Below, piece by piece: positions 7,574 through 21,065 of a stretch of DNA of 64,000 nt; the first letter of the stretch is position 1; each line of letters starts with the position of its first letter. A program made the position numbers and the translations under genes. A model generated the notes under the pieces. It made no database searches, was not told where the DNA came from, and saw nothing but the letters and a program-made list of their open reading frames with translations. The DNA lies in the IMG/VR virus record IMGVR_UViG_3300044701_002789, positions 1-64,000 of that record, one strand, 5' to 3'.

Positions 7574-8173
7574 TTAAAAATTAGATCCTGGTTTAACGGA
7601 ACCAAGTGCTCTTTTATTAACTGGCAAACAAGGACTCTTGAGGGCACTAGCATTACTCAATTTCTGAAAACTTCCTGCGGTCATTTTCATAATATTTTTA
7701 GCACTTGTATTTATTTCCGATGAATAAAGACTCATTGCTTCACCAGCTTTAATATTAATATGTTTAGCGGAATCTAATTCAATTTTTTCATTTGCCTGGA
7801 GAGAAATAATTCCATTGCTGTTATCATTTCCGGAAGCAATCAATTGAATATTTTCTGCTTGAACTTTAAATGTACCTTTAGTTACAATTTCAATATTTCC
7901 TTTAGCAATTCCATCACCACCAGATGCGTTTAGATAAAATGCAACATCATTTTTCTGTATATTATCACCACAAGTAATTTGATATCTTCCTCTACATCTA
8001 GACCATATCCACCCAGGTCTTTTTCCAACTTGTTCAATAGTGATAAATTCAAGTCCACCTTGTCCCTGTAACATGATAGAAGATTTTGTTTGATCACTAT
8101 GAATGTGTCCAAATCTTAAATTTCCATCTTTAGTTCGTATATCTTTTATTTCTTTATTTTGTGATTTTGACAT
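7574..8173 (-). CDS. gp5/VgrG C-terminal-like spike protein
   Basis: alternating beta-strand repeats; downstream of gp5-like gene; likely start MSKSQ at 8173. Confidence 0.5.
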   Translation of the reverse strand: MSKSQNKEIKDIRTKDGNLRFGHIHSDQTKSSIMLQGQGGLEFITIEQVGKRPGWIWSRCRGRYQITCGDNIQKNDVAFYLNASGGDGIAKGNIEIVTKGTFKVQAENIQLIASGNDNSNGIISLQANEKIELDSAKHINIKAGEAMSLYSSEINTSAKNIMKMTAGSFQKLSNASALKSPCLPVNKRALGSVKPGSNF

Positions 8174-9753
8174 TAGAATACTCTCCCAACACAATCTATG
8201 ACAGTTATTAATTGAACATTTTCTGGCACACTTTCAATTTGACTTTCTATTGGTAAAGTTAAATCTATTCTAATAGGTTTTAAAATTACAGAAAATGTTG
8301 CATTAAACCCAGTATTGGAATTTGTTCTTATACTAGGTAAATCCAAAAATCCCGCGCCAGGTTTAATTATATTTACCCGATCAATTTGACCAGAATCATT
8401 TACTACTAATTCTGTTGAAGAACCATTATTTGGAGTTATTATTAACTTATCGCCCGGTCTATATCCGAATCCAGGATTCAAAACAACAATTTCATCAATA
8501 ACCAAAATTACTGGATAAGTTGGGCCAATATTTTCTGGTGATGGTGGTGTGACTGGAACTAAAGGTAATGACACAACCTCGTCCCTATCTAATATTCTAG
8601 GAGGTCCATCTGGCGGAAAATAAGTATCTCCTTTTTTAACTTCAATGGGTCTATATGGTTGAACAACATATTTACCACCACATTTTGTCTGCACATATCC
8701 TTCATCAGGTTCTTTCCAGACTCTTTCATTACCACCCAAACTCCCATCAGGTGCAGACAAATATCCATCACCAGGAGCGACTATGGTTATATTTTTTATT
8801 TTCTTACTTCTTTTTAATTTCTTAACAATCTCTTTTTCAAATTTATTTCTAGGATCATCACACTGATTAAAAAAATCTTGGTTAGATGTTCCAGTGTCCC
8901 CAGGGCCTCCTGTCCCAGCACCACCAGCACCTCCAGCACCTCCAGCACCTCCGGCGCCTGTCCCAGCACCACCAGCACCACCAGCACCTCCAGCACCTCC
9001 AGCACCTCCAGCACCTCCAGCACCTCCGGCGCCATCAGCACCTCCGGCGCCTGTCCCAGCACCACCAGCACCACCAGCGCCTCCGGCGCCTGTCCCAGCA
9101 CCACCAGCGCCTCCGGCGCCTGTCCCAGCACCACCAGCGCCTCCGGCGCCTGTCCCAGCACCTCCAGCGCCTGTCCCAGCACCTCCAGCGCCTCCGGCGC
9201 CTGTCCCAGCACCACCAGTACCTCCAGCACCACCAATTATACCAGAACCAGTTCTATCATTAGTTGTTAAATCAATTCCACTAGTATCTTGATCATCATC
9301 TATTAAGTTTACTAATAATTTACTACCATTACCTTTTCCGCATGGGTCTATAAGTTCTGCGGAAACATTATTTAAAAATCCAAATCCAGGATTCACAATA
9401 TCAAATCCAATAACTGAAGATGATATTGGACTTATAATTGCATTCGCCGCAGCACCAAATCCGCCACCACCAAAAAATTGAACCAATGGAGGACCACAAA
9501 GTTGAGGATCTGTTGGACAACTTGGAGCAGTTGGAAGTAAATTGGTTGGTGATAATTGATTGACTTCATTAATAGAAAGTTCCTGTTCAATTCCATCGCC
9601 ATTTTGAAAATAAAACCTTTTTGATGGATCTGACTGAGCAACTTGATTTGCCTGATCTACAGTTAATCCACCAACTTTTTTACCATCATTATCAATGAAT
9701 GAAACCTTTATACCAGTCTGAGGAATAATTTTTGATAAAAATGGAAATGACAT
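8173..9753 (-). CDS. baseplate/tail structural protein with Gly-Ala-rich linker
   Basis: NPGxGY/F motifs typical of cyanophage virion proteins; GGAGGAGTGA tract. Confidence 0.6.
   Translation of the reverse strand: MSFPFLSKIIPQTGIKVSFIDNDGKKVGGLTVDQANQVAQSDPSKRFYFQNGDGIEQELSINEVNQLSPTNLLPTAPSCPTDPQLCGPPLVQFFGGGGFGAAANAIISPISSSVIGFDIVNPGFGFLNNVSAELIDPCGKGNGSKLLVNLIDDDQDTSGIDLTTNDRTGSGIIGGAGGTGGAGTGAGGAGGAGTGAGGAGTGAGGAGGAGTGAGGAGGAGTGAGGAGGAGGAGTGAGGADGAGGAGGAGGAGGAGGAGGAGGAGTGAGGAGGAGGAGGAGTGGPGDTGTSNQDFFNQCDDPRNKFEKEIVKKLKRSKKIKNITIVAPGDGYLSAPDGSLGGNERVWKEPDEGYVQTKCGGKYVVQPYRPIEVKKGDTYFPPDGPPRILDRDEVVSLPLVPVTPPSPENIGPTYPVILVIDEIVVLNPGFGYRPGDKLIITPNNGSSTELVVNDSGQIDRVNIIKPGAGFLDLPSIRTNSNTGFNATFSVILKPIRIDLTLPIESQIESVPENVQLITVIDCVGRVF
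8905..9236. repeat. GC-rich 9/15-bp tandem repeat encoding (GGA)n/GTGA
   Basis: direct inspection. Confidence 0.95.
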
Positions 9754-9755
9754 TA

Positions 9756-11513
9756 TTATGCGGAGTTTTGTGTTAATGTAACTACACCAGACCTAATCGT
9801 ATCTGGTGGTAAATTAAATGTATTACTAGATCCAGAATTTGATGTATTTGCTGATACTGGTGAAGATGATCCTTGTCCCGTACCCGTTGGTGAATTTAAT
9901 TGTGGATTTGATGGTATTGGTTTTGGATCACCACCGGGAAGTGCTGAACCATCTTGAGATATCTCTGTATATTTAACACATTCTTGTTCATCATCACAAG
10001 TAAAGAATTTTATAATTCCTGAGATAAATTCTAAAGCATTAAACAAACTAAAACCTGCAATGTTTCCACTTAAGATTCCGGCGATTGAAGAAATAAGTGC
10101 ATTTATTGGGGCAAGTGCTTTTTCTAATATTGATGCGATTGGCCCTAAAATACTATTTAAAAGTTCACCAACTAAATTTTCCGCAGCACAAAGAGGAACA
10201 TTAATAACATTATCTAGTAATTTAGAAAGAATGTTTGCTAAAAGAGTTTTAAGACCCGCGATTAACTTATTAAATAAACAATTAATAAGACTTATTCCAT
10301 TTTCCAATTGTTGATCCAATTTAACAGCTTCGCCTGGAAATAAAAATGGTGCAACTGTTTTGATTTTATCTTGAACTTGTTTTAAAATATAACCACGAAT
10401 TCCATTGATAGTATCTTTTGCAAATCTAGAAATTTCTTCAATCGCACCAAAAACTTGTTCTTGAACTTTTGCAGTGAATTCTGTAATTTTTGCAGAGAAT
10501 GCAGATACTTGATTAAATTTCTTTTTAAGATCTTCTATCGTATTAATAAGATTTTTTAGGATTCTCTGTATTCCTTTTGTGCGAGAATTATTCTTCTTAC
10601 AAACATCCAATAGAGGAATTTTCTTCCTCATATCAATGTCCTGTAAATTAGTTGCTTCGGTTCTTACATGTTGCGCTTCTGTTATTTGTAATGGTGTCTG
10701 TCCAATAATTCTATCATCAGGAACTAAAGCAGCTCTCAGTGGATCACCATCAGTATAAGTATTGTTAAACTGTTGATACCCTTGATTACAATTTCCAACC
10801 GAACCTGCATCTGATCCAGGTTTTCTAGATGCTTTGACTGTTGCGATTAATACTTGCCTTTCAACTTCGGATGCAGAAAGACCTGCTGCCCTTGCCTTTT
10901 GTCTTGCCTCAGTTGCTGCTTTAAAAACTTCCGATGATGGTGTTTTAGATGGATCTAATAGTTTTATAAGTTGCGCAATACTTAATTGATCCACATTTGG
11001 TGGAACCGGAACATTTGCTAAACTACCGGGACCAGTTCTTGGTGTTGGTGGTGTTGTTGTTGAAACAGATCCTCCAGATGAAGTTGTTGCGGGTTGATTT
11101 GGTGCAGATTCCCCTCTTACTCTTGGAACATTGTTATTGGAGTTTCCAATAACTCCCATAATATAACCCTCTTGACCTGCCATTCCATCCATAAAGAATC
11201 CAAATACAACGGATCCCGATTCAATTGATGGTGTTTCTGTTGCACCACCATGACCAGAACCAGCAGTTACAGGCATTACGACCTGACAATATGCCATGTC
11301 TTTTGGTGGAAGTTTATCTAATTCTCCAGTATGCCAATTAAACACGCGAACCTTATAACGATGTCCCCATCCCTTAATTCCGGTAACATTCGTAAAAGTT
11401 TCACCTTGAATATTATCCGACCAAGTTTCTTTTTGCTCCACTCTACCCAACCACCAAGGTGGATTCATGAAAAATTGAGGATTAAACAAAGAACCTGCAG
11501 TTACATCAGACAT
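9756..11513 (-). CDS. baseplate hub protein, gp5-like N-terminal OB fold
   Basis: WWLGRVE..RYKVRV..VFGFFMDGMAGQEGYIMG matches the T4 gp5 N-terminal pattern. Confidence 0.75.
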   Translation of the reverse strand: MSDVTAGSLFNPQFFMNPPWWLGRVEQKETWSDNIQGETFTNVTGIKGWGHRYKVRVFNWHTGELDKLPPKDMAYCQVVMPVTAGSGHGGATETPSIESGSVVFGFFMDGMAGQEGYIMGVIGNSNNNVPRVRGESAPNQPATTSSGGSVSTTTPPTPRTGPGSLANVPVPPNVDQLSIAQLIKLLDPSKTPSSEVFKAATEARQKARAAGLSASEVERQVLIATVKASRKPGSDAGSVGNCNQGYQQFNNTYTDGDPLRAALVPDDRIIGQTPLQITEAQHVRTEATNLQDIDMRKKIPLLDVCKKNNSRTKGIQRILKNLINTIEDLKKKFNQVSAFSAKITEFTAKVQEQVFGAIEEISRFAKDTINGIRGYILKQVQDKIKTVAPFLFPGEAVKLDQQLENGISLINCLFNKLIAGLKTLLANILSKLLDNVINVPLCAAENLVGELLNSILGPIASILEKALAPINALISSIAGILSGNIAGFSLFNALEFISGIIKFFTCDDEQECVKYTEISQDGSALPGGDPKPIPSNPQLNSPTGTGQGSSSPVSANTSNSGSSNTFNLPPDTIRSGVVTLTQNSA

Positions 11514-11762: not shown

Positions 11763-13070
11763 TTACATTTTCATTGATCTTCTTCCGTAAGCTTCACGAA
11801 TTAATTCTAAAGAAGTATAACATTGTTGTTGTGGATCTATTCTATGACATAAACTTGAAATTAAATATACTCCACTAATTCTTGGATCTTGAGTTGGATT
11901 TGGTTTTGTAGATTGTTCTGGGAAATCACAATATATTAATTGTCCAGCTTCCAAACTAAAATCTCCCGCAATTGTAATTTGAACCTTAACAGTAAATGCT
12001 TGATTGTATCTAGATGAAGAGGCTGAAAGATAATCTTTTTTAATGGTGTCCAGTTCTCTTGATTGTTCAACTGGCAACAAATTACCGATAGATTCTGTCC
12101 CCGTAAAAAATCTTGATGGATTTGAAATAAAATCAAGATTCATATTTTTACCAAATTCAGTCGCAAGAGAATTTGTGAATCCTACTTGTTGTGCAATATC
12201 TAATGGATTGCAATTATATACACTTTCTAATGTATTGAATAAATTCACCGAGGAATTATATGTTCCCATCTGAAGTTGATCTCTAAGATCCGCATCATCA
12301 ATAACTTCAGAACTTAGTATTTTTCCAGTGTATCCTGGAGGTGGATCCGAAACAGTATTATTTTGAATATATTTCTTAATGTATTCTTGGCCAAATAAAC
12401 CATCTATGGATTTAAATTTATAACCACTTTTTGTTTCAAAGAAAAAATAACCAGCGAGTAATCCAGCAGCAGTTGTATTTTCTTTAATTGATTGGGACGC
12501 TAACCACATTATAAAGTAAAAGGGTTTTTTAATAGTAGCAATAAAAGATCTACTATTTTTAGTTGGTTCAATGTCTATTGTTTTATTGGTTCTTAATCCT
12601 TCAGTATCAGTTTTAATAATTTTAGTTACAGAATCTGAAATTTTTCCATCATATCTTTTCTTTAATCTTACACTTTCATTCTTTAAAAACTCTTTAGATA
12701 CTAATTCTATGATTTCAAATTCTCTAAGTTTATCGCTACCTTTACTTCTACCACTGATATACATTGCGGTATCATCAGTCTTAAAAGATATTTTTTGTTC
12801 TAAAGCATCTTCAAGTTCAATATAAACTTTTTCTCCTCTACTTATTTTTATCTTATTGGATGCGGTTATTCTACCACCAGTACCGTCATTTCCATCTGAA
12901 GCATAACCAGTGTCAGTAAATGCTATTGTCATTCTTACGGTTTCGGATAATATATTTTCATAATAATATAATTCAGATATTCCACCATTAAAAGCTACTG
13001 GTTCACCTCCAGTGTTCGGAAATACCTTAAAAATAGGTACATTACTTTTTGTTAGGATTTCTATTCTCAT
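11763..13070 (-). CDS. baseplate hub protein (gp27-like)
   Basis: 435 aa; YFFFETKSGYKFKSIDGL and GDFSLEAG..SGVYLISSLCH motifs; position. Confidence 0.65.
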   Translation of the reverse strand: MRIEILTKSNVPIFKVFPNTGGEPVAFNGGISELYYYENILSETVRMTIAFTDTGYASDGNDGTGGRITASNKIKISRGEKVYIELEDALEQKISFKTDDTAMYISGRSKGSDKLREFEIIELVSKEFLKNESVRLKKRYDGKISDSVTKIIKTDTEGLRTNKTIDIEPTKNSRSFIATIKKPFYFIMWLASQSIKENTTAAGLLAGYFFFETKSGYKFKSIDGLFGQEYIKKYIQNNTVSDPPPGYTGKILSSEVIDDADLRDQLQMGTYNSSVNLFNTLESVYNCNPLDIAQQVGFTNSLATEFGKNMNLDFISNPSRFFTGTESIGNLLPVEQSRELDTIKKDYLSASSSRYNQAFTVKVQITIAGDFSLEAGQLIYCDFPEQSTKPNPTQDPRISGVYLISSLCHRIDPQQQCYTSLELIREAYGRRSMKM

Positions 13071-16000
13071 CCTATAACCTCTAAGTTTTCGAATGTATTA
13101 TTATTTACTATTTTGGAAATTACTAAACTTCCACCACCTCTTCCAATAGGAATTGGAACAACTTCGGGATCAGTAGGAACTCTCATAATTACAACTTCTT
13201 GTTGTACATCATAATCCATATATCCAGAAATGGATTTTAGTTTTTCAATTATTCCTGGTGCTCTAGCAATTAATTGTGATTTGTTTTCAATATCAATTAT
13301 TTCTTTTGCCAGGTCAAATCCAAAAAGATCTACGGAGTCTTTATCTATTACTTTAAATAATTCTCCTTTATGCAATTTCAAAATAAATCCATCTCTAGGA
13401 ACAATACCAAAGTTCTCTCCATGAAATGCATAATAATCTGGAGCACCCGAATTTAATTTCATTAATTGTTGTGGCGCAAGAGTACCATCTGGTTTATATC
13501 TACCATGTCCAACAAATGCATTCGTTCCAACAACATCAGCAGATACACCATAACCATCAGTTGCACTATATTTCATATTTCTAAGTGCAAGAGGAAAAGC
13601 AACTTTATTTCCTTTACCAGTACCTCCTATTTGTAAATCTAATTCTGTTTTTCTATGTGCTGCTTGTCCTCTTGAAATATATGCTCTTATTTTTTCATCA
13701 CTAGAATTTACGGGAATAGTTTCTCCAGATCTTCCGACGTAAATTGACTTTTTCCCCAAAAAATGTTTAATCACTCTGAATCCAGCTGTCGCAACTCCAG
13801 ATCCATCTCCAGGTTTATTTGTTCCTATATGAAAATGAGTACCTTTTGACCTCCCAGAGTTTCCTTGAATAAATCTACCATCTCCGCCTCGGGTCATGCC
13901 AGAAAAATCTGCAGATGTTGGAATTTGGTATCCTTTTTTAGTTCTAAATCTTTGTAAACTTGCAAGATATTGTGCATGTATTTTTGGACCTTTATCATTT
14001 TGAATGTATTCTGCAGGTCGTTCCCATTTTCTCATCCACCAATCCGCAGCTTGCTGAGAAGAAGAAAACTTTGTATTTAAGTATTGTTGACTTGGTTCAC
14101 CTTTTTCCGTTAATGCATAATCAATTTGTCCTTTCCAATTAGATGCATAATTTGGAACTGCTCTTAAAAAATTACCTTTTCTTGGTTCATTTGAATATTG
14201 GAAAAGACCCACTCCTGGCCCTCCTTGTTCAGATACTCCTGGTCTAAATCCACTCTCTCTATGAATATTAGCCATAATACCTAAAGCATGAATATCACTC
14301 ATTCCTTTGGATATTAAATAATTGTATATGTCTCCTTGTAATCCTTCTGGGGAAAATTGACCCGCAATACCACCAGCACCATCATCACCCTCATTACCTC
14401 TATTAATATTTTCTTCAATCATCTCCTCCCTACCAGTTGGTCGTAATGCCAACTCTTGGGATAACTTGCGAATAGTTGCATTAACATCTCTGGAAACAGA
14501 TTCTTCTACTGATCTTGCTATTACTTTCGTATAATCTTCTCCTTGAAAGAATTGTCTCGCATCCACTTCTCCGCCCCCAGAAAATGCAAGCAATGAAGAA
14601 TCAAAAATTCTTCTCATCCAAGAATTTAATCCCTTACCAACATTCAAATAATCTATTTTATCTGGTGACTGACCTAAAATAGATTTGAATATAATTGTAG
14701 AGATAGTACCAAATATATCTGTTGATTTGCTCCAAATATCATTATAAGTCTTCAGTAAAAACTCTTGGGGATTAGGTGTTTTTCCAGTCGTAGTTGGAGA
14801 TTTTTTCTTTACTTGGGATTCATCTTGCGATTGACTTTGCCTTACTCTTGCCGCTCCCCCAAACCACCCAAAAGGATCCCACCAAGGTCTTTGTGTTTGT
14901 TTCTTTTTAGTATCTGGGAATACCTTTTGAACTTTTTCTTCGCCGCCAATACTTGCCCCAGGTCTTATTTTTCTGGGCATTATTGAAATAGTTCTAGATG
15001 GTTTTTTCTTCTTTATGGTTCTTCTAGGGCGTGAAGTTTTTCCAGATATTTTTGGTTGACCTCCTCCAGCAGCTCTTACGGGTTTTTGTTTTTTTTGCTT
15101 TTTGGGAGGTTTATTGCCAAAAAACATATCATAAAGAACACCACCGGCTTCAGAACCTGCCCAAGACCCCAGAAATGCGCCAATAGGCCCACCAATAGCA
15201 GTACCTATTGCACCCACAAGAACAGCACCAATTCCTTTAAAGGCTGCTTTACCTATAGGTTCCCCCAGTGCCCAAGACAAACCAAATTCAATTAGTCCAC
15301 CAATAATCGGTATTTTATTGACTAAAGGTTTTACGAACTTGAGAATTTGCTTTGCTCCACTTTTTCCCGCCGCACCAACAAAAGCATTTCTTGCAACTCT
15401 TGATATAAATCCTCTTCCACCACTTCTAGGTAAATTAGTTAAATTTTTACTTCCAAATCTAGTTTTAAATTGATCTACACCATATCTTCTAGCATATCTC
15501 TGTTGAGCATTTTTTCCAACTCTATTACCCTTCAAATCATAACCACGTTTTCCTGGGGAAGATCTACCAGTGTCAAGATCACCACTCAAAGAAGATAATG
15601 CTGCAACAACTGCAAGATCAAAAACTAAATTTAAATTATCCGTAAAAGTATCAAATAATTTTAAAACACCATCACCGCCTATATTACCAAGAAATGTGCG
15701 AGTGCTTTTGTATATTTTATTCCCCCAGTCAACAAAGGTAATAAAACCATCTAATAATTTGCCGCCCCAATTTATAAAAAATTCTCCAGCAGAAATTATA
15801 ACTGGAACAATTTTCAAAAGTTTTGGTAGAAAATCTATTAATCTAACGAATATGAATCCCAAAAATGTTTGCGTTATATAGTTTTTTATCCAATCAAATA
15901 TTCCTAATTTTGGTGTTGATGGTAATTTTAATTTATTATCCTGTTTTGGTTTTTTCTTTTCTAGTTCTTTTTCCCTCTTTTCAAACTCAGATTTCTCTAA

Positions 16001-16291
16001 ATTCAATCTAGAAATCTTTGCCTGTTTTTTTCTTAAAGATAAATTCTTGTTTAATAGTTTATCAATTTTTACTACTTTTGTATATGACTTTTCGCAACAA
16101 TTTTCTTTAGATTCCGGTTGTTTTTTATCTTCACCGACAAAAGGAACTAGAGCATTAGTTGGTTCAACTTTATTGGCATTTTTTGGTTTAATACTATTGT
16201 ATGGCAGTTTATTTTGATTAGGAACAATCGCCAAATTACTCTTGGTGTTCTTTATAAGTGGAGAATTTGATAGAGGTATTAAACTTGCCAT
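13067..16291 (-). CDS. tape-measure/hub-like protein with phage tail lysozyme and M23-like region
   Basis: hydrophobic Gly-rich helices; GIMANIHRESGF..GVGLFQY; GNSGRSKGTHFHI. Confidence 0.65.
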   Translation of the reverse strand: MASLIPLSNSPLIKNTKSNLAIVPNQNKLPYNSIKPKNANKVEPTNALVPFVGEDKKQPESKENCCEKSYTKVVKIDKLLNKNLSLRKKQAKISRLNLEKSEFEKREKELEKKKPKQDNKLKLPSTPKLGIFDWIKNYITQTFLGFIFVRLIDFLPKLLKIVPVIISAGEFFINWGGKLLDGFITFVDWGNKIYKSTRTFLGNIGGDGVLKLFDTFTDNLNLVFDLAVVAALSSLSGDLDTGRSSPGKRGYDLKGNRVGKNAQQRYARRYGVDQFKTRFGSKNLTNLPRSGGRGFISRVARNAFVGAAGKSGAKQILKFVKPLVNKIPIIGGLIEFGLSWALGEPIGKAAFKGIGAVLVGAIGTAIGGPIGAFLGSWAGSEAGGVLYDMFFGNKPPKKQKKQKPVRAAGGGQPKISGKTSRPRRTIKKKKPSRTISIMPRKIRPGASIGGEEKVQKVFPDTKKKQTQRPWWDPFGWFGGAARVRQSQSQDESQVKKKSPTTTGKTPNPQEFLLKTYNDIWSKSTDIFGTISTIIFKSILGQSPDKIDYLNVGKGLNSWMRRIFDSSLLAFSGGGEVDARQFFQGEDYTKVIARSVEESVSRDVNATIRKLSQELALRPTGREEMIEENINRGNEGDDGAGGIAGQFSPEGLQGDIYNYLISKGMSDIHALGIMANIHRESGFRPGVSEQGGPGVGLFQYSNEPRKGNFLRAVPNYASNWKGQIDYALTEKGEPSQQYLNTKFSSSQQAADWWMRKWERPAEYIQNDKGPKIHAQYLASLQRFRTKKGYQIPTSADFSGMTRGGDGRFIQGNSGRSKGTHFHIGTNKPGDGSGVATAGFRVIKHFLGKKSIYVGRSGETIPVNSSDEKIRAYISRGQAAHRKTELDLQIGGTGKGNKVAFPLALRNMKYSATDGYGVSADVVGTNAFVGHGRYKPDGTLAPQQLMKLNSGAPDYYAFHGENFGIVPRDGFILKLHKGELFKVIDKDSVDLFGFDLAKEIIDIENKSQLIARAPGIIEKLKSISGYMDYDVQQEVVIMRVPTDPEVVPIPIGRGGGSLVISKIVNNNTFENLEVIG

Positions 16292-16294
16292 TTT

Positions 16295-19243
16295 TTATTT
16301 TCTAACTCCTAATGTTGATTGCGCAACGGATGTTCCTTTAGGATGCAATGGACTGAATGATGGTGGTTTTGATTTTGATGGAACGTTGACGGAAGATTTT
16401 CTATTTTGACCCGAGACTTTACCCAAATCTATAATTTTTGGTTTTGATGTGGATCTAGTTAAAGGAGTTACTGGTGATCTCATCTTTGGTCCACTGGAAA
16501 ATCTTACGGGTGATGATGAGTTTGTTGGAGATAATTTATTAGTATCATAACCTTTTTTTGATGCATTGGAATTTCCATCCAACATTGACTGGATTACATT
16601 TGCATAATCAATAGCACCTTTTTCTGTTGCTTTTTTGGTAAAAATATATCTAGATTCTCCTGGTTGAGCAAAATATGAAAAATACTGTCTATCAGATCCT
16701 CCCAATTTTTTTCCATCTGGACTATAATCAGAACCAGAATTTTCTTTAATCATTCCTCCACCTTGATACTTTTTAGAAGATTCTTCATTTGGTGTTATCA
16801 TTCCTCCACCTTGATACTTTTTAGAAGATTCTTCATTTGGTGTTATCATTCCTCCCATCATGTTTCTAATATCATTATTCTCTGAAATATTATTTGCAAT
16901 AGGTGTAACCTTACCGCCATGTTGAAACTTAAAGAAATTTGGATTGAAATTTATACCAAAAAAAGAATTGTTATTTTTTGGTGGGGAGTTTGTTTCTTTT
17001 GGTTTTTGAGGTGCAATAGACCTTGATAAATCTTTTGGTCCACTTAAAATCAATTTTCGTTCTAAGGCTATTCTAGATGGAGAAGGGCCGCCCCTTTGAA
17101 CATGGGTGGCGGCACTAACCATATCACCTTTAGTAAGAGCGGATGTTAGATTTCTATATGCACCTATAGGACCATATGGAGCATTATACCCAACTAATGT
17201 AACTCCGGCTCTTTGATTATCACTCATTTTATTCCAAGTAGGAATCTTTTTACTATAAACTTTACCCAAGTTCATAATATTGGTATTAAGAATATTGTCT
17301 GCCTTGGACTTTGTAATTGTATCTCCAGGTTTAACTGGTTTAGTACCATTCAATATACTATCATAATATGTTGATCCCCACCCTATTGTTGGTTGCCCCA
17401 CACTGTCAATATATGAATGAATATTTGTTTGTGGTGATATTGTATTCCATGCTTTTCCGGATATAACACTTTTTCCTCCAGGTTTAATATAATCATTTTG
17501 CCCTTTAGATAATGAAGATAGTGCTTCATCATGCTTCAAATGCTTAGATACTGTTTGAACAAATCCACCACCTGCGGCATAAGTTATACCGTTTGCAATT
17601 TGTGGAACATTAGTTCCTCCACCAGCAGCATTCATAGATTCTAATGTTTCAACACCATATTTTTTAACTGCTCCAGCAGACATAACAAATTCTCCATCAC
17701 TAAGCATCGCTGGTACTTTATCATCTTTAGGTCCACCAGGACCTTTTACCATACCACTAGATGGTGCATTATTCATACTTCCAAATAAATCATTTAAACC
17801 ACCATTAGAAAATTTTAATAATGCTACATTTCCTCCCCCAGAGTATTTTTGAGTTGGAGGAGTTCTTTCTTGCTGTGATTCATTTTTTCCAGTGACATCT
17901 CCGAGGAATTTAGCAGTACCAATAGTAACAGCAGCTGTTGTTGCAAGTTGTAAACCTGCACCTATAAGTTTGCCTTTTGTTCCCAAAAAATTTCCAACTT
18001 TTGCAGCAGCACCCCGTTTACCAATAAAGGAAAGTAAACGAGGCAAAACTGCTTTAGTTAATTTTAAAGATCCCGCAATAAGTATTTTGGATAATGAACC
18101 AATAGCTCTACCAAATCCAGTTCCAAATCTTAGATATAATGCAGCAAGTATAGGCCATTTATCAGATAAAAACTCAATAATAGTTTTTATTTTACTTTGA
18201 TTATCAGGATCCGCAATCCATTCCAGCAATTTAATGAATACTTTACCAAGAATTATATTAGTAATATAATTCAATATCATATCCCAAATAGATTGAAATG
18301 GTTTAGTTATTGCTGATAATGCCTTTCCAATCCCCTTGAATGAATTGGATTCCATTTGATTTTCTCTATCTTGTCTGCTTCTTTTCTCTCTTGTTCTTCT
18401 TTCCTTTTCTGATCTATTTGTTTCAAAATTATTAATTTCAGTAAGAGTGCTTATAATAGAATCTAGTTTTTCCCCGATCCTTTCACAGCATGTTTTTTGG
18501 GGTGTTCTAATTACTCTGGTCTTTTTAGTTACATCTTTTACATCTACCTCTTCAATTTTAGGTTCATAACGAAGTCTTTCTGTGGATAATTTTGAAACCG
18601 GAGATTTTATTATCGCAGAAGTTTTTGGTTCGGAGACATTAGAAGTTCCCGGAGGATTTTTATCACCAGAAACTTTAGTTTTTGTTTCTTTTAAATTAAA
18701 TGTTTTTGTTTCTTTATCTTTTATTCTCCATACTCTTTTAAGTTCTCCTTCAAGAAGTTGTTGAGTTTCAAAAGGAAGTTTTGTATTTACTAATCTATAT
18801 GAAGCAAGTGTAGTTTTAATTGCATCAAAATATGTCTTTGCATTAATTTTAGTTCCTGCTTTTAACTTCAGAAAAACAAGAATACCCTCATCTACTTGGT
18901 GATCTATTGTAACATTTTCAACTTTTTGTCCAGGTTCATCTTTCCGCGATGAAACTTCTGCATTTATGCGAGGTAACGTATTTGTTCTATTTACTCTAGC
19001 ACTTTTTATTTTTATCTCAATAATTCCAGTTTTATTTTTTACCCTATTAAGTTCTTTTTGTAATAAATCTACTTGCTCTTGACTTAAATTACTATCGCCC
19101 AACTGATTTTCAATAAGAATCTCCGCGATTCTAGATCTATAATCTTCATAATCAATATTAGTTAACTGAGCATCATCAAATTGAAGCAAATCAAAAATTG
19201 CTCTTTCAATAGTGTGAGTAATAACTTTTGATCTACCATCCAT
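16295..19243 (-). CDS. tape-measure/hub-like protein with GH24 lysozyme domain
   Basis: GPGGPKDDKVPAMLSDGEFV tape-measure motif; HDEA..YIDSVGQPTIGWGST lysozyme motif; 16-aa tandem repeat GGMITPNEESSKKYQG. Confidence 0.7.
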   Translation of the reverse strand: MDGRSKVITHTIERAIFDLLQFDDAQLTNIDYEDYRSRIAEILIENQLGDSNLSQEQVDLLQKELNRVKNKTGIIEIKIKSARVNRTNTLPRINAEVSSRKDEPGQKVENVTIDHQVDEGILVFLKLKAGTKINAKTYFDAIKTTLASYRLVNTKLPFETQQLLEGELKRVWRIKDKETKTFNLKETKTKVSGDKNPPGTSNVSEPKTSAIIKSPVSKLSTERLRYEPKIEEVDVKDVTKKTRVIRTPQKTCCERIGEKLDSIISTLTEINNFETNRSEKERRTREKRSRQDRENQMESNSFKGIGKALSAITKPFQSIWDMILNYITNIILGKVFIKLLEWIADPDNQSKIKTIIEFLSDKWPILAALYLRFGTGFGRAIGSLSKILIAGSLKLTKAVLPRLLSFIGKRGAAAKVGNFLGTKGKLIGAGLQLATTAAVTIGTAKFLGDVTGKNESQQERTPPTQKYSGGGNVALLKFSNGGLNDLFGSMNNAPSSGMVKGPGGPKDDKVPAMLSDGEFVMSAGAVKKYGVETLESMNAAGGGTNVPQIANGITYAAGGGFVQTVSKHLKHDEALSSLSKGQNDYIKPGGKSVISGKAWNTISPQTNIHSYIDSVGQPTIGWGSTYYDSILNGTKPVKPGDTITKSKADNILNTNIMNLGKVYSKKIPTWNKMSDNQRAGVTLVGYNAPYGPIGAYRNLTSALTKGDMVSAATHVQRGGPSPSRIALERKLILSGPKDLSRSIAPQKPKETNSPPKNNNSFFGINFNPNFFKFQHGGKVTPIANNISENNDIRNMMGGMITPNEESSKKYQGGGMITPNEESSKKYQGGGMIKENSGSDYSPDGKKLGGSDRQYFSYFAQPGESRYIFTKKATEKGAIDYANVIQSMLDGNSNASKKGYDTNKLSPTNSSSPVRFSSGPKMRSPVTPLTRSTSKPKIIDLGKVSGQNRKSSVNVPSKSKPPSFSPLHPKGTSVAQSTLGVRK

Positions 19244-19370
19244 GAGATTGTTGTTGCTTTTGTTTTAATTCTTCTTCTTCAATGTGTTGTTTCAACAATT
19301 CAACATATATATCTCTTTCCCAAGGCATCATATTTTCTATTTCTGTCAATGAGTATTTATGGTACTGCAT
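19233..19370 (-). CDS. small baseplate hub assembly protein (cyanophage gp51-like); probably reached by a -1 frameshift from the upstream gene
   Basis: MQYHKYSLTEIENMMPWERDIYVELL; frame stays open upstream to the slippery site at 19427-19433. Confidence 0.8.
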   Translation of the reverse strand: MQYHKYSLTEIENMMPWERDIYVELLKQHIEEEELKQKQQQSHGW

Positions 19371-19420
19371 CAAAGAAAAATTCAAACGAAAATAACTCTC
19401 AAGATCTATATAAATTAAGG

Positions 19421-20140
19421 CTAGGCGAAAAAACTTGATAACCCTTCAAGAGTAACTTCACTTTCAACTTTTGTCTTAGGGTTAGTTACTTTAACTGTAT
19501 GGGAAAGTTTTGGCATAGTTTCAAAATACTTCTCAATTTGTTTAAATTGAGAAGTATTCATTTGATCTAAAAATTCCATGAGTTCTTTTTTGGTCACATC
19601 AGCAGCAACCCATACTTCATCCTCATTATAAATCTTGTCTATACAAGACGCAATAAGTTCAAATGATTGATCAATAGCATTATTATTAGATATATCAAAA
19701 TTGTTTTTGATGAATTGGTCCAATGATGGATACTTCATTTCCATCATCAAACTATCATCTAACTTAATTTTATTAGTATGATCCTTATTTGTTTGTACTT
19801 TAATATCTTCTACGTTGATCTTAACTTCAACAGTAGTTTCTTCATCATCTGGGCAGAATATGTTTACATCTATTTCTTCACCAACAGATTTTGCTCGGAT
19901 ATTTAAGAAAATATATTCTATATCAAATGTTGGTAAAGTTTCAACTTTGATATTCTTGGCTTCTACACAATTTTTAATAACAGTTTTTATTGCTGTAGTA
20001 ATTTGTTTAGTATCCTCAGACTCCAACGCAATAACCAGTAATTTTTCTTCTTTAACTAAAAATGGTCGGTACTTTATTGTTTCGCCAGTAGAAGGTAATT
20101 CCAATTCATAAGTTGGCGTAGCAATTTTTGGTAAAGGCAT
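19421..20140 (-). CDS. baseplate hub subunit/assembly chaperone (T4 gp26-like)
   Basis: MPLPKIATPTYELELPSTG..YRPFLVKEEK..LEGLSSFF. Confidence 0.9.
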   Translation of the reverse strand: MPLPKIATPTYELELPSTGETIKYRPFLVKEEKLLVIALESEDTKQITTAIKTVIKNCVEAKNIKVETLPTFDIEYIFLNIRAKSVGEEIDVNIFCPDDEETTVEVKINVEDIKVQTNKDHTNKIKLDDSLMMEMKYPSLDQFIKNNFDISNNNAIDQSFELIASCIDKIYNEDEVWVAADVTKKELMEFLDQMNTSQFKQIEKYFETMPKLSHTVKVTNPKTKVESEVTLEGLSSFFA

Positions 20141-20192: not shown

Positions 20193-21065
20193 CTACCCAA
20201 AATTTATTCCAGTTAAAGTACTCTGTTGAAAATTTTGTGCAACATTTGTCGCATTAAAATTAGCATTGGTAAATGTTCCTGGCGAATAATTTCCAAGATT
20301 TATATTTTGAGAATATATGGTGTTTAGATTAGCTTGCTGAATTGGATTAGATTCAAATGGATTGGTTGGAACTTCTGATGACAATGATTCAACCGGAGCA
20401 TAAGAACCAGAATAAGAATTATTAGAAACTACATATCTATCATAAGAAAAAGACACAGTGACTTTTAATAATTGTGATGTTTCATAAGATACTGGTATTG
20501 AAGATATTGATATTGGAAAAGAATTGAAAAAACTATAAACTATTTTTTCCGACTTACCATTTTTTGGACTGGTTTCTGGTGCTTTTCCCGGTTTTCCAAT
20601 ATTTCTTTCAAATTTGGTTATATAAATTGTAGTTTTATATGTTTCGGGATAAGCAATTCTATATGAATTATTGAGGTTGGGTGCATCTTCTATCTGTTCA
20701 CCAATAATAAATCTCATCCAAGCTTCAAATAATCTTATTTGAGTATATTTCTGATCCACGTAAAAACTAAAATCGGATTGATTATCATATAATCTCCGAT
20801 ATGCATGTCGTTGTGTTACACCAGTAAAATCGTTATTTAATTCATGTGTAGTTAAAGAAGATCCTGGTAAAACCGCATCTGAGCAAGAAATAATTAGATT
20901 TTTAGTAATCTCAGATTTATTCCCCAACTTATTGAAATTAAGAATTCTTTCCACTCCAGATGGATACGGAAAATAACATTCATAATGAGATGTTAATGCT
21001 GGTTGCATTAAAAATCTTTTAATATCACTTACTGATCTTACTTCTGGATTGGGTGATATAGACAT
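20193..21065 (-). CDS. tail tube-fold protein (gp19/gp54-like)
   Basis: CSDAVLPG..FPISISSIPVSY..VTVSFSY. Confidence 0.7.
   Translation of the reverse strand: MSISPNPEVRSVSDIKRFLMQPALTSHYECYFPYPSGVERILNFNKLGNKSEITKNLIISCSDAVLPGSSLTTHELNNDFTGVTQRHAYRRLYDNQSDFSFYVDQKYTQIRLFEAWMRFIIGEQIEDAPNLNNSYRIAYPETYKTTIYITKFERNIGKPGKAPETSPKNGKSEKIVYSFFNSFPISISSIPVSYETSQLLKVTVSFSYDRYVVSNNSYSGSYAPVESLSSEVPTNPFESNPIQQANLNTIYSQNINLGNYSPGTFTNANFNATNVAQNFQQSTLTGINFG

Follow-up and report, generated by a model that had tools for sequence, protein, structure and literature searches.

A conserved slippery heptamer at the end of the gp26 gene suggests that a T4-like freshwater phage and its relatives extend gp26 by -1 frameshifting

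The analysed window comprises 64,000 nucleotides (positions 1 to 64,000) of the IMG/VR virus record IMGVR_UViG_3300044701_002789, a T4-like freshwater phage, and the genes given here with coordinates are all encoded on its minus strand. A gene of 290 aa (20193..21065) resembles tail tube proteins (PF23849 Phage_TTP_2, E 4.3e-16; phrog_45 tail tube, E 1.1e-33), although a BLASTP comparison of its product with T4 gp54 was not significant. Directly downstream lies the gp26 gene (19421..20140), whose 239-aa product matches PF12322 (T4_baseplate, the gp26/gp51 family) with E 7.9e-77 and 258.3 bits against a curated cut-off of 24.5, and was modelled by AF2 with a pLDDT of 94.6. It is followed by an open -1 frame (19233..19427), a first tape-measure-like gene of 982 aa carrying a lysozyme domain (16295..19243; PF00959 and several tape-measure PHROGs), whose ATG overlaps the end of the -1 frame by 11 nt, and a second tape-measure-like gene of 1074 aa carrying a tail lysozyme domain (13067..16291; PF18013 and tape-measure PHROGs). 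The resulting order is tube-like, gp26, extension, tape-measure-like, hub and gp5-like spike, and the tube-like gene occupies the same position in Vibrio phage D483, HTVC008M and phiM12, while the same slot is filled in P-SSM2. The placement of the gp26-extension pair between the tail tube gene and the tape-measure gene likewise holds in D483, HTVC008M and phiM12.

The gp26 gene ends TCA AGT TTT TTC GCC TAG, in which T TTT TTC (19433-19427) is placed in X XXY YYZ register and the zero-frame stop (19423-19421) follows one codon later; in most family representatives this stop lies 0-3 codons after FF/FL. From the slip point the -1 frame reads F RLALIYIDLESYFRLNFSLMQYHKYSLTEIENMMPWER and remains open until a TAG at 19235-19233, giving an extension of 64 codons plus stop in which base 19427 is read twice. 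The first 11 codons of the -1 frame contain no ATG, GTG or TTG, and the first start-like codon, a TTG at 19385, lies after the conserved DLESYF segment. The extension matches phrog_634 (E 1.5e-29) as well as the C-terminal end of the phrog_150 profile, and a tblastn search found it in 514 phage records, with every listed match but one starting at the slip residue. Contigs from independent metagenome runs cover 19314-19700 without differences or indels, showing that the arrangement is not an assembly error. The observation in the earlier note, namely an in-register heptamer at the end of a gp26-like gene with an open -1 frame behind it, thus holds. A single heptamer of this kind is not beyond chance, since 13 in-register T_TTT_TTN occur in 14,189 codon positions of the long ORFs of the window (about 0.09% per codon), but its position in the last three codons of gp26 and its conservation across relatives are far beyond chance.

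The earlier note had proposed a programmed -1 frameshift joining the two reading frames, and had named a variable frame offset, a non-conserved slippery site, or independent initiation alone as observations that would speak against it. We compared the junction across metagenomic relatives and reference phages, and the offset was -1 in every homologue examined. In 79 of 79 loci with 69-82% protein identity T TTT TTC is invariant and the preceding codon always ends in T (AGT 42, TCT 34, plus GGT and GAT), whereas neighbouring Ala, Leu, Gly, Glu and Lys codons use all their synonyms. In 77 of 77 loci of a second set (34-100% identity) the heptamer is T TTT TTA (54), C (17), T (4) or G (2), so that the encoded residue changes between Phe and Leu while Leu is never encoded by CTN; L091 and L092 agree. 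The same site and offset occur in nine reference phages (P-SSM2, S-PM2, S-CRM01, S-CAM7, P-RSM1, HTVC008M, phiM12, the KVP40-like Vibrio phage D483 and a Paraglaciecola phage), whereas two family members have non-canonical junctions (C CTT TTT A and T TTT TCG). The slippery site is thus conserved at the nucleotide level beyond what the protein requires.

With respect to independent initiation, 34 of 40 distinct junctions of the second set have no ATG in the first 13 codons of the -1 frame, and 29 of 40 have no ATG, GTG or TTG, yet codons 5-9 (L S H D S) are conserved with third-position wobble. The window and P-RSM1 likewise lack any such start codon before the conserved motif, and HTVC008M lacks an ATG there. 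Separate initiation cannot explain these many lineages. However, in the closest clade of the window every relative has an ATG 5-8 codons after the slip, just after the zero-frame stop, and a separately initiated small gp51 may therefore also be made there. Since all three points came out in favour of a frameshift, the interpretation offered in the earlier note is supported, although no fusion protein, ribosome profiling or RNA data exist, and a search of sequencing runs found the sequence in DNA metagenomes only.

Further support comes from T4 gp51, of which residues 1-201 match the full PF12322 profile (E 3.9e-52) and residues 200-246 match the extension (E 1e-5), and gp26 proteins and extensions tile T4-type gp51 with a two-residue overlap at FF. 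The predicted fusion of 302 aa, complement(join(19233..19427,19427..20140)), thus has the domain order of T4 gp51, a PF12322 body followed by a helical tail of about 50 residues, but differs in that the extension lies in the -1 frame and not in one open frame with the body. T4 carries two PF12322 genes, encoded as separate, divergently transcribed paralogues about 20% identical, while this complete 258-kb genome, D483, HTVC008M, GD1 and P-RSM1 have one each. Where no shift is needed the site is lacking; T4 gp26 ends GAG TTC TTT GAG, and the junction codons of T4-type gp51 vary freely.

Possible stimulatory elements were also examined. A downstream RNA structure 5-9 nt after the heptamer is common at frameshift sites but not obligatory, and close relatives have a 5-bp stem (GGTCC-ATAT-GGACC) with covariation (83.7% paired; reached by 0 of 500 shuffles) and a mean z of -2.2. 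In the largest clade it follows about 10 nt downstream, or 6-7 nt where an outer stem forms. RNAalifold on 78 junctions gave no consensus structure, however, the covariation being seen only for the manually specified stem, and the signal is weak in the second set (z -0.8). In the window the corresponding position (19403..19416) holds a weak AU-rich remnant, and the downstream RNA is no more stable than shuffles (-3.1 kcal/mol, z +1.1), so that these observations do not settle whether a structure contributes. Upstream, GAAGGG (19442..19447), about 9-10 nt 5' of the heptamer, is a possible but weak and uncertain Shine-Dalgarno-like element. GAGG/AGGG is enriched here, the Glu codon being GAG in 63 of 79 loci and GAA always being followed by GGG, but it overlaps a protein-constrained Glu-Gly, and T4 gp26, which does not frameshift, has AGAGG; hence, we do not count it as evidence.

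The most likely explanation, to which we assign a probability of about 0.85, is that a fraction of ribosomes translating gp26 pause with tRNA-Phe on UUU (P site) and UUC (A site) of U UUU UUC, that both tRNAs slip back one base to re-pair with UUU UUU, and that translation continues in the -1 frame for 64 more codons. This would yield a 302-aa gp26-gp51 fusion alongside the 239-aa gp26, the two sharing an identical gp26 body and only the fusion carrying a small helical C-terminal domain. In T4 and its close relatives, in this view, the same two products come from genes 26 (short) and 51 (body plus extension in one frame), and the slippery site is gone. While the anatomy of the sequence, its conservation and the homology to T4 gp51 were shown, the slip itself, its efficiency, which for U UUU UUC in the unknown host is not known, and the chaperone role are our inferences.

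An alternative, which we consider unlikely, is that the small gp51-like ORF is an independent gene translated from its own start, by coupling or reinitiation after the gp26 stop, and that the T-run is kept only because the protein needs Phe-Phe. All public records inspected annotate two separate genes or only gp26, and in 78 close relatives an ATG lies 5 and/or 8 codons after the slip, in or next to the conserved hairpin, which could serve coupling. Besides the junctions without a start codon, however, a need for Phe-Phe does not explain the fixed T before it, the fixed TTT-TTC order in 79 of 79 loci, or the switch to Leu only through TTA/TTG, and T4 gp51 shows that the two parts work as one chain. 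Slightly less likely still is a transcriptional shift, in which RNA polymerase adds one extra U on the T6 run and normal translation gives the same fusion; a few lineages, such as phiM12 and HTVC008M, do have 7-8 Ts. Productive polymerase slippage in bacteria usually needs runs of about 8-9 or more, whereas the run is exactly 6 in the window and in nearly all relatives, and the covarying hairpin of the largest clade is placed as at ribosomal sites; no RNA data were available to test this. A chance coincidence or sequencing error is refuted by the recurrence of the feature in more than 160 independent loci across several phage families.

By position and layout, the two proposed products would be the counterpart of the lambda G/GT and P2 E/E+E' tail assembly chaperones (Levin, 1993; Xu, Hendrix and Duda, 2004, as cited in PMC5009743), a major short form and a minor long form that handle the tape-measure protein during hub and tube assembly. 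The comparison with lambda G/GT, already drawn in the earlier note, fits the gene order, and as in lambda and P2 a -1 slip on an X XXY YYZ heptamer would occur within the last few codons of the gene between the tube and tape-measure genes, with the zero-frame stop following at once. P2 also uses a T-rich heptamer (T TTT TTG). In contrast, the protein is larger, with an N-terminal chaperone-like domain plus further domains, the assembly target in T4-like phages is the baseplate hub, and none of 91 family members hits a Pfam tail-chaperone family (Phage_TAC_*) even at E 5. A profile search against PDB sequences found nothing, Foldseek against PDB gave no significant match, and AFDB clusters returned only gp26-like 'baseplate protein' clusters. 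Residues 1-91 of gp26 best matched 3fgx (Z 7.9), the HK97 tail assembly chaperone 2ob9 (7.6) and YqbN 3klu (7.3), followed by 5ir0 at 5.3 and the remaining rows at 4.3 or lower. This similarity is only moderate and was not recovered with the T4-type gp51 model, for which VIA-align gave only generic helix-loop-helix matches to its tail, and the fold comparison therefore points neither clearly to nor away from a chaperone fold. The chaperone assignment thus rests on synteny and a middling fold score. Binding to the tape-measure, tube or hub proteins and absence from virions were not assayed, and a complex prediction of the extension with the tube-like protein scored 0.00 with both chains poorly folded, which is not evidence either way. 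The literature on these points covers T4 only, for which gp26 and gp51 are listed as hub assembly chaperones, and gp51 is stated to be absent from the particle (Leiman et al., 2010; PMC3004832).

The tail-chaperone frameshift is treated as near-universal in long-tailed phages, with T4-like phages as the notable gap, and the roles of T4 gp26 and gp51 in hub assembly have stayed unclear for decades. We speculate, as a reading somewhat more probable than not, that gp26 and gp51 are the long-missing tail assembly chaperone pair of T4-like phages, and that the ancestral state is one gene with a -1 frameshift, kept in cyanophages, pelagiphage, phiM12-like and KVP40-like phages. In the T4 lineage it would have been replaced by a duplication that fixed the long form as gene 51 and removed the slippery site from gene 26, a natural case of recoding being exchanged for a paralogue, which would also explain why gp51 acts in 'catalytic' amounts. 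For gp26 and gp51, literature searches, also covering frameshifting, hub assembly, PF12322 and tape-measure chaperones, found no prior report, although subscription papers were not covered and an earlier mention cannot be excluded. If this reading is right, T4 gp26 and gp51 gain a testable role as short and long chaperones for the tape measure gp29, and the T4 lineage offers a natural experiment in which two genes do the job that one recoded gene does elsewhere, and in which a product ratio set by frameshift efficiency can be compared with one set by separate expression.

It would also follow that hundreds of genomes in the 'phages' collection (the 514 records with the extension) carry an unannotated recoded gene and that the small gp51 ORF is mis-annotated or missing in them, and a clean, deeply conserved U UUU UUN site would be added to the set used to train frameshift predictors. 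The small ORF annotated as gp51 in cyanophages (T4-GC12; phrog_634) is the same DNA segment with the same conserved peptide, and is recorded as a stand-alone gene of about 45-60 aa, whereas our evidence indicates that it is mainly, or only, the C-terminal domain of a frameshift product; in several genomes it is not annotated at all.

In the window, all features of interest are on the minus strand, beginning with a tail-tube-like gene of 290 aa at 21065-20193 (PF23849; phrog_45), which is followed by a 239-aa gene at 20140-19421 matching PF12322 'T4_baseplate', the gp26 family, with an E value of 7.9e-77. This gp26 gene ends TCA AGT TTT TTC GCC TAG, and T TTT TTC is therefore positioned at 19433-19427 in X XXY YYZ register, one codon before the stop, so that the observation made in the earlier note is correct. 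From the slip, the -1 frame reads F-RLALIYIDLESYFRLNFSLMQYHKYSLTEIENMMPWER... and stays open to a TAG at 19235-19233. This stretch matches phrog_634 'baseplate hub assembly catalyst' (E 1.5e-29) as well as the extreme C-terminal end of the phrog_150 profile, which is the gp26 family itself. Two large tape-measure-like genes with lysozyme domains follow (19243-16295 and 16291-13067), and after them a tail protein and gp5-like hub/spike genes. The ATG of the first tape-measure-like gene overlaps the end of the -1 ORF by 11 nt. The window is part of a complete 258-kb phage genome with terminal repeats from freshwater metagenomes, and its closest named relatives are T4-like cyanophages. Independent contigs cover the junction without any differences or indels. 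Within 19310-19350, over the NMMPWER motif of the extension, metagenome contig depth spikes 20- to 40-fold because many co-occurring related phages share these words.

A single in-register T_TTT_TTN is not rare in this AT-rich DNA, as 13 were found in 14,189 codon positions, and the argument therefore rests on conservation. A constant frame offset and a conserved slippery site among homologues had been named in the earlier note as points on which a programmed shift would stand or fall, and both were examined. In a first set of 79 IMG/VR loci, whose gp26 is 69-82% identical to that of the window, the offset of the extension was -1 wherever both parts could be scored (78/78), and T TTT TTC was invariant in 79/79. 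The two Phe codons are TTT then TTC every time, and the preceding codon is AGT (42), TCT (34), GGT or GAT and never ends in C, A or G, while nearby Ala, Leu, Gly, Val, Lys, His and Ser codons use all their synonyms. In a second set of 77 scorable loci related to a different family representative, at 34-100% identity, every locus has an in-register T TTT TTN, with A in 54, C in 17, T in 4 and G in 2. The encoded residue thus flips between Phe and Leu, but Leu is only ever TTA or TTG, which is the signature of selection on the RNA heptamer rather than on the protein.

The same site and offset occur in the reference phages P-SSM2, S-PM2, S-CRM01, S-CAM7 and P-RSM1, in Pelagibacter phage HTVC008M (T TTT TTT), in Sinorhizobium phage phiM12 (T TTT TTT), in the KVP40-like Vibrio phage D483 and in a Paraglaciecola phage. 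In contrast, two family members have non-canonical junctions, TCC CTT TTT ATC TAG (locus L093:2190-2215) and GAT TTT TCG GGG TAA with only 5 Ts (locus L094:1400-1420), but still carry the homologous extension in the -1 frame at the same spacing, which could reflect single-tRNA slippage or a weaker site. A tblastn search found the extension in 514 phage records, and every listed match but one starts at the slip residue; where both genes are annotated, the match overlaps both. None of the records examined annotates a joined CDS. Moreover, the small gp51-like ORF is not annotated at all in a number of GenBank/RefSeq cyanophage records, including P-RSM1 (L084), S-CAM7 (L089) and several ACG-2014 and S-CAM records, leaving an apparent gap of ~180 nt after gp26.

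We then asked if the extension is translated from its own start. In the window there is no ATG, GTG or TTG in the first 11 codons of the -1 frame, and P-RSM1 likewise has none, whereas HTVC008M has no ATG there and its annotated start cuts off the conserved DLETYY motif. In the second set, 34 of 40 distinct junctions have no ATG in the first 13 codons of the -1 frame, and 29 of 40 have no ATG, GTG or TTG. Yet codons 5-9, which lie beyond the zero-frame stop, encode L-S-H-D-S with classic third-position variation (CTT/CTC/CTA/CTG, TCT/TCA/TCC/TCG, CAT/CAC, GAT/GAC, and AGT/TCT/TCG/AGC). In the first set every relative has an ATG at codon 8, and about half also at codon 5, and a separately initiated small peptide can therefore not be excluded in that clade, although it would be additional to the frameshift and not an alternative to it. 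Sequence that evolves as coding but has no start must be entered by ribosomes coming from gp26.

In T4, gene 26 (208 aa) ends GAG TTC TTT GAG TTA CTA TAA, with no slippery site, and runs straight into gene 25, while gene 51 is divergently transcribed next to it. The T4 record also annotates a second, shorter CDS (26'; L085:3803-4090) inside gene 26, so T4 gene 26 gives two products by a different route. T4 gp51 (249 aa) matches the whole PF12322 profile over residues 1-201 (E 3.9e-52) and is therefore a gp26 paralogue, about 20% identical to gp26, while its residues 200-246 align with the -1 extension of the window from the first residue (E 1e-5). In a joint alignment, zero-frame gp26 proteins and -1 extensions tile the T4-type gp51 proteins, overlapping only at the FF of the slip site. 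T4 has two PF12322 genes, whereas the genome of the window, D483, HTVC008M, the Paraglaciecola phage and P-RSM1 have one each. Long T4-type gp51 was found in about 1,200 records, and the genera named in that tally are Escherichia, Klebsiella, Shigella, Acinetobacter, Enterobacteria, Aeromonas, Enterobacter, Yersinia, Salmonella and Serratia phages, a set disjoint by organism from the 514 frameshift-type records. Where the two parts are in one frame, the junction codons vary freely (GTG TTT AAG, ATC TTT AAG, GTT TTC AAT and ATT TTC AGA). So nature provides the predicted fusion as a single chain, and the nucleotide constraint exists only where a shift is needed.

The predicted structure of gp26 is confident (pLDDT 94.6). 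An exhaustive structural comparison placed three small proteins on top for residues 1-91, namely 3fgx (Z 7.9), the HK97 tail assembly chaperone 2ob9 (7.6) and B. subtilis YqbN 3klu (7.3), the latter belonging to the XkdN-like tail chaperones; after 5ir0 at 5.3, the remaining rows score 4.3 or lower. However, these Z values are in a range considered middling for this method, Foldseek gave no significant match although 2ob9 has its highest probability, and the matches were not recovered with the T4-type gp51 model, so that the fold comparison does not settle whether gp26 has a tail-chaperone fold. No sequence-level link to tail-chaperone families exists. The T4-type gp51 model (pLDDT 92.7) shows the extension as four helices continuing from the helix that begins at the FF junction. 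The family consensus (alignment A2) has four Cys in two pairs, and several members give weak zinc-ribbon Pfam hits, but the gp26 of the window (19421-20140) lacks most of these Cys, with PDDEE and NPKTK in their place.

Possible stimulatory elements were also examined. In the first set, a 5-bp stem with a 4-nt loop (GGTCC-ATAT-GGACC and covarying versions) begins 10 nt after the heptamer, or 6-7 nt where an outer stem forms. For this stem, 83.7% of cells pair against 77.6% in shuffles (0 of 500 reach it), all five pairs show double changes, and slid registers pair at 53% or less. The region also folds better than shuffles, with a mean z of -2.2. On the other hand, RNAalifold predicted nothing, the second set is weak (z -0.8) and the copy in the window is degraded (z +1.1), so that a downstream stimulatory structure, which is common but not obligatory at such sites, is neither established nor ruled out by these data. 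The hairpin is therefore a clade-specific enhancer at most, and lambda G/GT also works without a known structure. In the relatives L002-L080 the element, 10-24 nt after the heptamer (alignment A1 columns 30-43), is a palindrome centred on CATATG that forms a short hairpin with compensatory changes and contains an in-frame ATG, whereas the window (19403-19416) has lost both the stem strength and the ATG.

Taken together, the best explanation, to which we assign a probability of about 0.85, is that tandem -1 slippage of two tRNA-Phe on U UUU UUC yields a 302-aa fusion beside the 239-aa gp26; the anatomy and conservation of the site and the homology to T4 gp51 are direct findings, whereas the slip itself is inferred from them. 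The interpretation in the earlier note of a programmed -1 frameshift joining the gp26-like gene to the small gp51-like ORF is thus supported. Initiation of the extension solely from its own start is unlikely, and transcriptional slippage on the T6 run is slightly less likely still. Chance or sequencing error can be dismissed. Less certain, but somewhat more likely than not, is the functional reading that this is the G/GT-type chaperone pair for the tape measure. This reading fits the gene order, the hint from the fold, and the literature, which lists T4 gp26 and gp51 as hub assembly chaperones and states that gp51 is absent from the particle (PMC3004832). Among the papers that could be consulted, none links gp26 and gp51 to a frameshift or to the G/GT chaperones, and a major recoding review does not mention T4-like phages or cyanophages in this context. 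While the tail-chaperone -1 frameshift is itself an established phenomenon, the present case has the added interest that it would explain T4 genes 26 and 51.

The region 13067-19243 (minus strand) carries two consecutive large tape-measure-like ORFs of 982 and 1074 aa, each with a lysozyme-type domain (PF00959 and PF18013), whereas T4 has a single gp29 of 590 aa. Further downstream, at 8173-11513 (minus strand), the gp5-like hub/tail-lysozyme homology is split over two adjacent ORFs of 585 aa and 526 aa, each of which matches a different part of phrog_1922.
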